Below, piece after piece: positions 33,946-40,599 of a stretch of 64,000 nt of DNA. Each line of letters starts with the position of its first letter. Position 1 is the first letter of the stretch. A program made the translations under genes and the position numbers. Origin of the DNA: Pavona decussata (lineage: Eukaryota); contig CDRNST010000265.1 in NCBI GenBank assembly GCA_977016875.1, positions 248,001-312,000 on the forward strand, given 5' to 3'. Under the pieces are notes generated by a model, which saw only the letters and a program-made list of their open reading frames with translations, did no database searches and was not told where the DNA came from.

Positions 33946-34326
33946 TTACTTTAAAATAATATTTAGGCTATGAAGCGTGTTGATGTAATTGCGCTGGGCA
34001 TTATCCAATGATTTGTAAAGCTCATACCTGAGGTAAACTTGGCCGGAAAAAAGTGGATTTTTTCTAGTTATATGAGTCGCTATAGGATGATAATATGTGT
34101 TTGAATAGTCCTGACTGTGTATTAGCTGACCTGTTGTAGAATCTTTTCCGGTGACCCTTTTGTCTACATGTTTTATTATAATATTACAAGGTGGAGTTTT
34201 GAATTTATCACCCAGGTCGTCCCCACACCCATAGCATTTTCTCACTGTTGGAGGCGTGATGACCAGCTCGTAAATACTTGGCGACATGCTAGAATTCCAT
34301 GAGGGCTGTAAGCCAGCACAGGGCAT
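33946..34326 (-). CDS. C-terminal Cys/His domain of the transposase (RKCYGC...H...YYH), separated by a single stop
   Basis: Same frame as the 618-aa ORF: TTC ACT TAA TCA CCA ATG. Confidence 0.7.
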   Translation of the reverse strand: MPCAGLQPSWNSSMSPSIYELVITPPTVRKCYGCGDDLGDKFKTPPCNIIIKHVDKRVTGKDSTTGQLIHSQDYSNTYYHPIATHITRKNPLFSGQVYLRYELYKSLDNAQRNYINTLHSLNIILK

Positions 34327-34332
34327 TGGTGA

Positions 34333-36292: not shown

Positions 36293-38682
36293 CTAAGAAA
36301 TGCAGGAAAAAATGAAAACTAGTCAGTGCGTGTAGATAATTTCATCCGATACCTACATATAACAGATTTAAATTTTTATACCTGCTTTTAATTAAAGCCT
36401 GAAGTGAACTTTCGTCTTTGCGATCGTCATCTGAGACTGCTGAGGCACTATGGGAAAAAAGTTATAGACTTTGTATCATGACCATCCATGACCCAGTAAA
36501 CTAAAACAATCCATCTGAATGAACTGAATTGCAGGGGCTAGGTATTCCAAAAAGCTGCAATCAACAACTCTGACTTTCATATCCAGTCAAAGGCAGCTGA
36601 GGAAATTTTTACTTTAACAAGTCTATTCCGTTCTATGAGCCCCCTGAGTAGACTTAACTCTATTTCACTCTTGATTAAAGGAAAATTTATCTTTTTTGTG
36701 CCAAATAGTATTCTTACCCATTTCGCTGCAAATAGACACCATACCGACCGAAAACTGCTAATTGAGGCCCAAAATGTGGTTTTCCGTGCACAAATTGGGC
36801 ATTTTCAGAGTTAAGCGCAGCGGGAGGGGGACAGCAGGGGGGGGGGGGGGGGGCTAAAGGGGAATCTCACCCTTTTCTCATGTTACTTTCCAATATTCCA
36901 CACATCGTGGAAACATGGGCACGCGTGAACTATTTCCGCAACATTGTTGCCTCGTTTAGCCAGCACATTACAAAAAGGTAGAGGCCCGCCGGGCCCGGTA
37001 CTCGCCCTCTACCCCTCCTCCTCCTATGAGATACTTTCACAACAGGATTAATGTGCCGGCTGAAATTTTAATTTGCAACAGTTTTACCTGAAGGCAGGTC
37101 GTAGCAATTCTTCGTCTGAATCACTCCCAGCTGGTTCTTTTTTGAAGGGATCATCAGGGCATACCGTGGTACTGAAACAATAACGATGACGATAACAATC
37201 TTAAATGCCTTAAGTCGTAAACAGATCAGAGTTAGTTGCTATTTTACTTCTACCGCCTTTTCTCGCAATCAAAGTTAGTTCTGCATGCCCAACTTTGCCT
37301 TAGATTGCAAGTCATGTCTAAATCATGGCGATTTAGACTTGAATTTTTTTCATTTACCCTCTTAGCATTAATAACTGTACTTCCTTTTACCTCGATTTGT
37401 CATTGAATAGATCCTTGGCTTTCGCATTTGAAGGACGACGATTCTGCCCTGTCTTTGTTGGTGTGTTTTCAGCAGAGCTAAGCTTGTCAAACGACAAGGT
37501 CAGATCTATCAGATCAACATCTTTCTCCTTGTCTTCTTTCTATAATAGGGAAAACAAGACAGTTGCATTATTATCGTTCTCGGTATTTTTTATCTTTATC
37601 GCTACTTTATTATTTAATGTCATGCCACGAGAAACGTACCGATGAATTACGCCGTCTTTTAATCCTTTTAGCCGCATTCAAGTCGTTCGATTCCTTTGGC
37701 GTGCTATCTTTGTCGGCTGAATCCTCTGAAATGGTAATGATTTCTTCCCGATCATCTTTACGGAAGAGATGAAACTGGGGATAAAAAAAAAAAAGCAATT
37801 TTCTCAAATTTCTGACATCAATGGAAATAAAAAAGCCTTCTTTTCCCATTCCATACTCTTGCCAGGGTCCAAATCTTTACTGGGTAGAATTAAGATGGAT
37901 GTCAAGATCATTACTCTTAACAGTATTGAAATAACTCTCCTTACCTGTGGCTCGCCCCTCCAAACAGGAACTCCAGGGTTGAATTCCTCCTCGCCCCACC
38001 ATTCCATTTCAGGAATTTGCCGCCTTCTCTTCCTTTGTGTCTGAAAAAAAAAAAATGATCAAAAAAGATCAACAGGATTTTACAGAAGTATGAAAGGCAC
38101 GTTTACCAACTGTTCAATTTTATTTGTAAAACTCTAAAAATTAAAACTTTAGGCACTGCCTAGAAGCTCCGCTATAGTGCGTTCCATAATAACCCGACCC
38201 TCATAAGGTTCCCCGGCTTCACTGTCGAAATCCTGTGGGGAATCCTCAGTGCACCAGTGCACAGGGGTGCTCCCAGGTCTCGTTAAATGACTGCGATATA
38301 ACGAAATTTATAGTTTAATCTAATGGACAGACCGTTTTCCAGAGGAGCGTTGATTAAAGGCACCATTCCCTTGAGACTTCTTCGGTGATAACCGCTCTTT
38401 TTTCGAAACCGCCGTCTTCCTCTCGACAACTACTGCATTATCATCTGAGGTACTGGCTGACAATTTTGTGGCATCAGCATAACTGCCGGTACCCTGTAAA
38501 AAAGGTGTATCGTGCTTGCATCAACTCGTTAGCATCGCATATTATTTTTATTACCCCCCCCCCCTCCCCCTCCGGTCAGACAAGTCACCCCTGGTTATGG
38601 ATATGATATGGTATGGTATATGTTTTGTATCAGCCCAAGGTATTCTTAAGGAACATTAGAAACATTAGAAACATCTATTTAC

Positions 38683-40599
38683 CGTATTTGTAGGGACAAT
38701 AGCCACATAATGGTCACCATCGCCAGTATGCCCCAAAAATATTGTGCCAAAACATATCCCTGAGCTTGGCCTCACTGTTCTTATACAATCCTCCTCTCCC
38801 TGTAAATAAATAAATTGGCCCGGGCAAGCCAAGGCATGTTTCTGGAGTTACAGGAAGCCCAAGCGGCAAGCCAAGGCATATTTGAATTGACTTCCCAGGG
38901 GCACAAGATACCCAGGCGGTAGAGTCACAGGAAGACCAGGCAGCAGGTCAAGGCATGCGCATAATGTATTTTTCACATAATTTTATTCAATATATATTGG
39001 ATGGTGGAGTGAGGTGTGACGTCGTGATGACATCACAGGGGTACAGAAAGCCCAAGTGGCATTTTTTTCATTTAATTTTTATTGGATGGTGTGGTAGATA
39101 GACCGTGACGTCAATGATGACGTCACAAAGAGCCACTTACAAGGCAAAAGAGAAACCCTGGAAACGAGGTTGCTTGTAAAGGGCTTCTTGTTACACGCAA
39201 TTTTCGCGGCGAGTTAAGCGCCTGCTTGCGTGTACTTGGGAAGACTTGCGATGACTTTCTTGCACTTTGATGGAGCTCAAAATCCACACACAAGTAGACG
39301 CAAGTTTTTCACCGTTTGGCCACCCAACGCAAGTGAACGCAAGTTGGTCTCTTTCGCGCGAGTGCAAGGCTGCACTGAAATAGCTTTTTTGAAACGCGTC
39401 CAAAATGGGGCTACTTGCGAGTCCGTTTGGCCGGGGCTTTAATTTCGCGAATTCCGTGAATAAATGTGACTAACATTGTATTCTATAATATGTGCTATAT
39501 AAGTGAAAAACCTTTTGAACTATAGAGTTTTTGCATTCAGAAAATGTGTGTGGAGACAAGTTGTCTTATCTTGACGCTATTCTTGTTTTTAATTAAGAAT
39601 CGTCTTACCCCGTGTACAGTGAGTACAACGATTTCCTGATGCATCACATCCGAGAATGCTTGGATTACCATGTTGGTCGCAAATTCGTCTCGTAATTTTA
39701 CGATGGCCTCTTCCCATTGAACGGGCTTTTTCTTGCCGCAAAGTCCTCCTCGCAGACGAACCCAAGACGGTCGTTCCCCGCATGCTGTTGATATTTAAAT
39801 TTTTGATTAAGCGAGGGGAATAGCTTGTTGAAATAATATTTATTTCTTGATATTCGACTGATGAGCTGATAAAGTACATTATAGTAAGTGGTTTCCCGTC
39901 TGGACGCACCCCAAACATTTCACGTCATGTCCGCCATTTGTTGTTCCTTTTTTCATGGGTTTCTCAATTGCGACTCTTTTAGTTCTTTATTCACTTTGTC
40001 TGTAGAAAGCGAGGCGTAATTGAACGGCCAACGGTCTGGGATATAAAAGTAAAACGAGTACGGAAAGAGTTCGTATTCAAATCCAGCTACAGCTTTTACT
40101 GGCACCCCCCTTGTCATTTTGCGTTTCCTTTGCTCTTATTCAAGCCTTCTAATGGGGGCTCTGTATTCAACTTTTACTCCACACCTGCACTCTGGTCAGA
40201 CTAGTTTGCCTCACCTGAGTGTCATGTAGTTAGGTAAGACCAATTTAATAACGTTTAGTCACTAACAGGCAACTTTTGTCGAGTTCGTAATCAATAAAAC
40301 ATAAAACGCGAACAATGCAAAGTACAGCAAAAAGCTAACTACAACCTTTCTGACTTTCGCTTTTGTAACTGACGTTACGTTATTCTTTCCTATCTATTTC
40401 TTTGCTCGTAATGACTATCAATGAAAATACTTACATCAAAGCGATGACTTAATAGATACTGGAAGGTCGCCTTCTTTAAGCACGCACCGTCTTGTTTCAG
40501 CTGGTGTGCAGCTGCCGAAAAAAAGCAGCTTCCATCTCCTTTTGGATTGAAGGAGACAATAAAGCCTTTCTGTTTCAATCGACTGCGAAATGATTCCAT
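38683..40599 (-). CDS. OTU-like cysteine protease domain (3 exons)
   Basis: PKGDGSCFFSAAAHQL (catalytic Cys), WEEAIVKL..ATNMVIQAFSDVMHQEIVVL, IFLGHTGDGDHYVAI (catalytic His). The exon1/2 junction is off by 1 nt unless a micro-exon exists. Confidence 0.72.

Follow-up and report, generated by a model that had tools for sequence, protein, structure and literature searches.

A pseudogenised Mutator-like transposon in the coral Pavona decussata whose transposase gene begins with an OTU domain

The window analysed here is a stretch of 64,000 nucleotides from the coral Pavona decussata (GenBank assembly GCA_977016875.1, contig CDRNST010000265.1, positions 248,001 to 312,000 of the forward strand). 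It contains a Mutator-like element (MULE) of ~9.8 kb that spans window positions 31373-41167 and is flanked on both sides by a target-site duplication (TSD). This is very probably a pseudogenised copy of an autonomous-type anthozoan Mutator-like transposon carrying one 10-exon gene, in which an N-terminal OTU domain of the deubiquitinase type is followed by a linker, a Cys/His finger, a DDE transposase core and a C-terminal domain. In what follows we show how the element is built, that exons 2-10 are spliced in a close relative, that the OTU fold and its catalytic Cys and His residues are present and that the fusion occurs across lineages and species, and we consider what the OTU domain might do for the transposon.

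The element has clearly delimited ends. The same 8-bp sequence, GTTTAAAC, borders it on either side, or the 9-bp sequence AGTTTAAAC if the A at 41167 is taken as flank, and the gene is enclosed by terminal inverted repeats (TIRs), as an earlier note on this DNA had stated (Table 1). The two repeats are near-identical over their outermost ~190 nt and can be recognised as far as ~270-440 nt; BLAST aligns the pair at 84.5% across 297 nt, with 70% across a further 98 nt. In four other copies, homology ends at window position 41166, and the copies in L032, L034 and L036 give the terminal consensus GAGTTTGCC. Two sister copies, on contigs C257 and C6, are 92-96% identical to the window element and are themselves damaged, with ~450 bp (window 36353-35902) gone from the first and ~212 bp (window 35213-35001) gone from the second.

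The gene lies on the minus strand, wholly inside the TIRs, and has AG/GT borders on every one of its 10 exons. It encodes, in order, the OTU domain (exons 1-3), an acidic, KRRR-containing linker, the Cys/His finger, the DDE core and a C-terminal Cys/His domain, and the intact protein would be about 1,164 amino acids long. The 618 amino acid open reading frame (ORF) on which the earlier note centred its description was confirmed on the minus strand at 36189-34336, within exon 10, and a second ORF of 126 amino acids (34326-33949, minus strand) follows downstream in the same frame. The features that the note had read in the upstream exons are also present: the first exon contains the Cys loop ..GDGSCFF.., exon 2, with the central helices, reads ..QWEEAIVKLRDEFATNMVIQAFSD..TVHG, exon 3, with the catalytic His, reads ..LGHTGDGDHYVAIV (also given as ..LGHTGDGDHYVAIVP), and runs of KRRR resembling nuclear localisation signals are found in the linker exons.

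What did not survive is the proposal that these exons form a GT-AG chain that splices in frame. The borders are as described, and RNA supports them for exons 2-10, but the window copy is out of frame in two places. Exon 2 is 176 nt long in the window, compared with 177 nt in the sister copies, producing a -1 frameshift near 39738; the C257 and C6 sisters read ..HAGNDRLGFVCEEDFADKKKPIQWEEAIV.. in a single frame from the acceptor acag/CAT. Exon 4 is 161 nt long, compared with 159 nt in C257 and C6, an extra CT near 38342 producing a +2 frameshift. Because of these lesions, the in-frame chain suggested earlier must have made use of incorrect splice sites that shortened exons 2 and 4. RNA contigs (see below) share both length differences from the window, and exon phases agree in the intact sister exons. 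In addition, an in-frame stop at 34335-34333 separates the 618 amino acid ORF from the conserved 126 amino acid C-terminal domain; P0002, a 90% identical protein of 741 amino acids from a public assembly, has Q at this position and continues ..CYGCG..KHVDKRV..YYHP... With one nucleotide missing from exon 2, two extra in exon 4 and a nonsense codon ahead of the C-terminal domain, the window copy is a pseudogene, unable to make the protein.

Table 1. Ends of the element and exons of the OTU-transposase gene, in window coordinates
Feature	Position	Strand	Description
Left TSD	31365..31372		GTTTAAAC; AGTTTAAAC from 31364 if counted as 9 bp
Left (3'-side) TIR	31373..31804	+	Tandem GTCGAGG heptamers at tip
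Exon 10	33946..36292	-	End of linker, Cys/His finger, DDE core, Pro-rich linker, stop, C-terminal CxxC..H domain
Exon 9	36382..36447	-	Acidic linker
Exon 8	37088..37171	-	Linker
Exon 7	37391..37539	-	Linker
Exon 6	37640..37774	-	Acidic stretch and KRIKRRR
Exon 5	37945..38040	-	TQRKRRR..EMEWWGEEEF; homologous to KRRAPLVMDWWEDEE of Oculina P0122
Exon 4	38333..38493	-	Linker
Exon 3	38683..38799	-	OTU His loop ..FLGHTGDGDHYVAIVP; RNA junctions
Exon 2	39609..39784	-	Central OTU helices: HAGNDRLGFVCEEDF, frameshift, KKPVQWEEAIV..TVHG
Exon 1	40435..40599	-	ATG at 40599; OTU Cys loop GDGSCFF; GTAAGT donor, at which an RNA contig ends exactly
Right (5'-side) TIR	40809..41167	-	Terminal inverted repeat; GTCGAGG heptamers at tip too
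Right TSD	41168..41175		GTTTAAAC; identical 8-mer at both ends

The Mutator superfamily is marked by target-site duplications of ~8-11 bp and by long terminal inverted repeats, and MULE transposases bind DNA via a Cys/His zinc finger. Several lines of evidence support placing the transposase in a divergent cnidarian clade of this superfamily: the 8-9 bp TSD, the long TIRs, the presence of a SWIM domain (PF04434) in eight of 20 aligned relatives, a set of invariant residues and the neighbours of the protein in the ESM Atlas. Across the 20 relatives, D262, D332, C354 and E443 (numbered as in the 618 amino acid ORF) are invariant and H357 is nearly so; D262, D332, E443 and the C354xxH357 pair are the putative catalytic residues. 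The SWIM domain was not found in the window's own lineage. When ESM Atlas clusters are ranked by features, the nearest named ones are mostly PF10551 and the rest SWIM, at 0.90-0.94, and when ranked by predicted fold, most of the nearest are PF10551, with TM scores of 0.41-0.51 over ~300 residues; overall, PF10551 MULE, FAR1 or MuDR clusters predominate. A search of the PDB with the transposase-family profile gave a single match, of SWIM to MEKK1, and so recovered no solved MULE transposase by sequence. The residues of the N-terminal finger (W32, C51, C57/C62, a CxxC insert at C85/C88, H118 and C120) fit the description of a 'WRKY-GCM1 with insert' finger (PMC1702500), by motif only and with no HMM match.

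A conserved C-terminal domain of ~120 amino acids (CxxC ... KH.D+RV ... YYH ... KNP.F) is present at window 33949-34326, in P0002 (residues 610-741) and at the C-terminus of the relative P0140. This CxxC..H domain closes the window's transposase lineage, in place of or after SWIM, and the 126 amino acid ORF that encodes it in the window matched no Pfam family.

The exons of the window gene were searched individually, with three natural full-length relatives (P0122, P0143 and P0140) standing in for the joined protein. P0122 is a 1152 amino acid NCBI gene model from Oculina patagonica with the same architecture as the window gene: an OTU domain that reads GNGMCFY.. / ..DSWGKALELLK..VVIVTVHG / ..LYFGHTGDHYVALKP is followed by an acidic/KRR linker and then by the transposase. 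The three window OTU exons are colinear with P0122 at 36, 37 and 46% identity, and the Cys and His are kept; indeed, the catalytic motifs (GDGSC in exon 1 and GDHYV in exon 3) are retained in all lineages compared. An exhaustive HMMER search with P0122 residues 1-170 identified 120 relatives among 1.84 billion proteins. Most of these correspond in size to single exons, with ends at residues 60, 120 and 159, from which it follows that the three-exon structure of the OTU domain is widespread. Among the relatives, P0143 (RefSeq XP_078365102, also from Oculina) matches P0122 residues 1-170 with an E value of 3.8e-36 and matches the Pfam OTU family PF02338 along the full model at 32.2 bits, above the cut-off of 23.3 bits. 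Three more distant relatives also pass (P0222, P0256 and P0203, at 36.8, 33.2 and 29.9 bits, respectively), and the N-terminal region of P0140 reaches 22.6 bits. Profile A2, built from eight domains, matches yeast Otu2 (5.7e-8), OTUD3 (9e-7) and also OTUD5 and the nairovirus OTUs. Single-sequence searches of the PDB were less informative: phmmer with the Oculina OTU region returned vOTU matches only, all sub-significant (E 0.13-0.16), and the P0140 N-terminal region returned nothing useful.

Structure prediction points in the same direction. An AlphaFold model of Oculina P0122 residues 1-165 has a pLDDT of 88.3, and the best 50 matches listed by Foldseek when this model was searched against the PDB are all OTU deubiquitinases, headed by OTUD3 (E 4.6e-8, TM 0.64/0.74). 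A complex predicted with this genome's own ubiquitin scores 0.70, compared with 0.00 for the best control; a score of 0.70 is reached by 51 of 78 solved complexes and by two of 108 mismatched pairs. At least 97% of contacts recur across the three runs, the partner pLDDT is at least 90, and residues 70-76 of the ubiquitin tail are placed at the OTU Cys loop (residues 26-31). Taken together, the predicted fold, the Cys and His residues and the predicted ubiquitin complex speak only for likeness to OTU deubiquitinases, not for activity, nor for the part that the earlier note suggested the domain might play against silencing or turnover of the transposase.

The ubiquitin chain used in these predictions is one unit of a polyubiquitin gene at G000:C132:762342-763931, which has at least seven head-to-tail units of 228 nt. 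Whole, intronless OTU domains that are 30% identical to P0122 are found elsewhere in open frames of 457 and 554 amino acids (C90:3338855-3339304 and C11:1217010-1217426, respectively).

What might such a domain do? In intact copies, the transposase would perform cut-and-paste transposition, and the tethered OTU domain may act as a deubiquitinase at the same site. Its target could be ubiquitin on the transposase, or on chromatin or repair factors where excision or insertion takes place, and removal of ubiquitin would in turn stabilise the transposase or aid repair. A deubiquitinase role of this kind is plausible. The more specific proposal, that the N-terminal OTU domain of anthozoan Mutator elements is an active deubiquitinase that is needed for transposition, protecting either the transposase or the broken site, donor or target, against a host restriction or repair decision that depends on ubiquitin, is offered here tentatively as one possibility. 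The OTU domain could instead be a self-processing protease that cleaves the precursor within the linker to free the transposase and does not act on ubiquitin conjugates at all. Self-processing was suggested for MULE transposases of Medicago that are fused to an OTU-superfamily protease (PMC1702500), and the long and poorly conserved linker between the OTU domain and the core would suit it. The nearest structures to the OTU domain, however, are all ubiquitin or ISG15 deconjugases, the predicted complex seats the C-terminal tail of ubiquitin in the active-site cleft, and no ubiquitin-like or Gly-Gly cleavage motif turned up in the linker (no search was aimed at such a motif). We therefore regard self-processing as unlikely.

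RNA evidence for the gene comes from contigs of four metatranscriptome runs belonging to one study, placed on the window at a likeness of at least 90%. Contigs of 4.07 and 4.29 kb, 90-95% like the window, join exons 2-10 at the predicted GT-AG sites (the exon 9/10 junction, for example, is at 36288/36381) and run through the transposase ORF. Each of the four runs has OTU exons 2-3 joined by splicing to the transposase. Exon 1 is covered by separate contigs, one of which ends precisely at the exon 1 donor and runs ~650 nt upstream into the TIR, so the right TIR probably holds the promoter and 5' untranslated region. The contigs stem from another copy or from a related organism, since their likeness to the window is 90-95% and one of them contains a 27-nt exon that is absent from this genome. 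The family, then, is transcribed and spliced as predicted, this being shown for a relative and not for the window copy. Of the junctions that the earlier note had looked to RNA to establish, those from exon 2 to exon 10 are borne out in this similar copy.

A number of results weigh against the reading of the window as a Mutator-like element with a single OTU-transposase gene. Window exon 1 alone scores 16.6-17.4 bits against PF02338, below the cut-off, and exons 2 and 3, each searched alone, have no Pfam match, so that the assignment to this family envisaged in the earlier note is reached by the relative P0143 and not by the window's own exon. Nor does Pfam recognise the 618 amino acid ORF as a MULE transposase, as the note had anticipated it might: PF10551 has no match to it at E<=1, and it matches one of the 20 relatives weakly (E 0.02, 15.8 bits, cut-off 27.6). 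The fold prediction for the OTU domain used the Oculina homologue rather than the window copy, and the score of the ubiquitin complex may be inflated by memory of solved OTU-ubiquitin structures. On the RNA side, the evidence is made up of contigs alone, from the one study. The exon 1-2 junction was not seen among them; one contig joins the exon 2 acceptor to a 27-nt upstream exon that is missing from the window and from this genome alike, and two contigs with exon 2 extend into intron 1.

These RNA results would also fit two expression units, a small stand-alone OTU protein and a transposase made from transcripts that start downstream of exon 1. No contig joins exon 1 to exon 2, those with exon 2 begin in intron 1 or in the foreign 27-nt exon, and stand-alone OTU isoforms of 185 and 220 amino acids are present in RefSeq for Oculina (P0143 and P0262). 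Exons 2-3, however, encode the catalytic His and, in all, two thirds of the OTU domain, and it is these that are spliced to the transposase in every run; exon phases match in the intact sister copies; and the OTU domain and core share one reading frame in P0122, in P0140 (1223 amino acids, from a Tara metagenome scaffold), where both lie in one uninterrupted ORF, and in L008 (a 1225 amino acid ORF on C395), where the core is in one ORF with the C-terminal half of the OTU domain. Two separate units are accordingly quite improbable in our estimation.

That the OTU exons and the transposase belong together as a single gene is also indicated by their arrangement elsewhere in the genome. A match to OTU exon 1 lies 3-6 kb upstream of the transposase, on the same strand, on C265, C257 and C6, which form one subfamily, and the same arrangement is found on C33, C60, C273 and C339, where the transposases are just 25-33% identical to that of the window. 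These lineages, and C152 and C67 as well, have the full set of three OTU exons, with unchanged boundaries and with Cys and His retained. Counted by lineage, the genome has at least four divergent ones in which a MULE core is preceded by this three-exon OTU domain. No stop interrupts the OTU exons or the 854 amino acid transposase frame on C273 and C339. Pfam found no OTU domain in ten relatives of 741-979 amino acids, because these are exon-10 ORFs only. In the 602 Mb searched there are ~150 OTU-like and 76 transposase matches; we estimate that chance would give fewer than 0.5 pairs within 10 kb, and seven are observed, every one with the same order and strand. On these comparisons the fusion of OTU domain and MULE transposase is real and old in cnidarians, and its conserved arrangement shows that it is no chance capture. 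Linkage of the OTU exons to the transposase in other copies of the family, which the earlier note had wished to see, is thus found on C257, C6, C33, C60, C273 and C339, and its central claim, that an N-terminal OTU domain forms part of the transposase gene, is upheld by the conserved lineages, by P0122, P0140 and L008 and by the RNA for exons 2-3. MULEs are established to capture fragments of host genes, and P0142 and P0263 combine a related OTU domain with a protein kinase. A Pack-MULE-like transduplication, in which the OTU exons would be a piece of a host gene that does nothing for the element, is nonetheless strongly disfavoured and highly improbable. In at least four lineages, with transposases that share just 25-33% identity with one another, the exons, their boundaries and the catalytic residues are all retained, and the layout recurs in other species, whereas a Pack-MULE would carry a lineage-specific fragment; the seven pairs also exceed the chance expectation.

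The proteins P0142 and P0263, from Logan contigs, are 574-616 amino acids long, and their OTU domain is 75% identical to that of the Oculina transposon. They could reflect domestication of a copy, the origin of the domain in the host or chimerism of the contig.

Several further sequences related to the element, or neighbouring it, deserve mention. In L032 (positions 467-2220, on C8), L035 (on C36) and L036 (on C62), two inverted copies of the 5' end of the element are present, each with OTU exon 1. These hairpin-like, non-autonomous derivatives are ~1.8 kb in length, and the GTCGAGG heptamer array is expanded in that of L036; in L032, the two TSD copies of the short derivative agree at just five of nine positions and are not counted as support. 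A different repeat of ~1.35 kb occurs at ~100 sites in the genome (for example, L052:834-2186), with ~93% identity among copies and inverted ends of ~105 bp. It carries an ORF that is 33% identical to OTU exon 1, adjoins a PIF1-like helicase ORF in L053 and probably derives, as a non-autonomous form, from another OTU-bearing element. Immediately outside the right end of the window element, 49 nt (41167-41215) match 30737-30785 in inverted orientation at 94% identity, ~580 nt beyond the left end; the MULE may have landed within a small TIR element older than itself. Within the introns, a run of G16-17 (36837-36858) and a C-rich run (38547-38577) form an inverted pair of 20-24 nt, 1.7 kb apart, that is probably chance low-complexity sequence.

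The earlier note had regarded the fusion as an unfamiliar architecture, a claim that is weakened by two published precedents. In Table 1 (group 14) of Dupeyron et al. (2019; PMC6446971), the Hydra element MuDR-6_HM is entered, without comment, with an 'Ovarian Tumour Gene'. Like the Pavona element, MuDR-6_HM is a cnidarian member of the Mutator superfamily, with one ORF and the OTU motif entered under 'Other motifs/ORFs' (Repbase; PMC6446971), but its host is a hydrozoan whereas the Pavona element is anthozoan; the comparison is one of table entries only, and the table gives no TIRs, TSD or OTU position. Babu, Iyer, Balaji and Aravind (2006; PMC1702500) described MULE transposases of Medicago truncatula with a C-terminal OTU-superfamily protease, for which they suggested self-processing. 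As in the coral gene, where the finger fits by motif only, a papain-like OTU-superfamily protease is joined in these to a WRKY-GCM1-type finger and a MULE core (PMC1702500). The host, however, is a plant and the protease is C-terminal, whereas in the coral it is N-terminal, encoded by three exons and followed by a linker rich in runs that resemble nuclear localisation signals.

OTU domains are known from other transposons also. According to Bao, Kapitonov and Jurka (2010; PMC2836005), OTU domains occur in Ginger1 and in Helitrons of animals, and Ulp1 is carried by Mutator elements from plants, hydra and lancelet; a role for the ubiquitin pathway in transposition was also proposed (PMC2836005). 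Ginger1 and the Helitrons resemble the Pavona element in being DNA transposons of cnidarians and other invertebrates with a PF02338 OTU domain (PMC2836005), but their transposase is Gypsy-integrase-like or Rep/helicase, and the OTU domain of Ginger1 is C-terminal. The Mutator elements with Ulp1 (the plant KI-MULEs and those of hydra and lancelet; PMC2836005) likewise carry a cysteine protease of the ubiquitin-like deconjugase type; theirs, however, is the SUMO protease Ulp1 (PF02902) and not OTU, and Ulp1 had no match in any Pfam scan of the window ORFs and relatives. With an OTU-bearing cnidarian MULE already on record, the novelty of the present element is limited (PMC6446971, PMC1702500); what is new is the anthozoan family, together with the N-terminal three-exon layout of its OTU domain and with the family's bounds and spread.

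Deconjugating proteases are found in several superfamilies of DNA transposons, with OTU in Ginger1, in Helitrons and in some MULEs and Ulp1 in other MULEs. We know of no experiment that has shown the function of any transposon-borne protease domain of this kind. One practical lesson concerns annotation: the OTU exons and the transposase ORF are one gene, which ORF-based or prokaryote-style gene calling breaks into small, exon-sized 'proteins'. For work on function, the anthozoan family offers clean material: its TIRs and TSD are defined, its three-exon OTU domain is conserved and retains the catalytic residues, relatives are transcribed, and the same genome has apparently open copies of a divergent lineage (C273 and C339).

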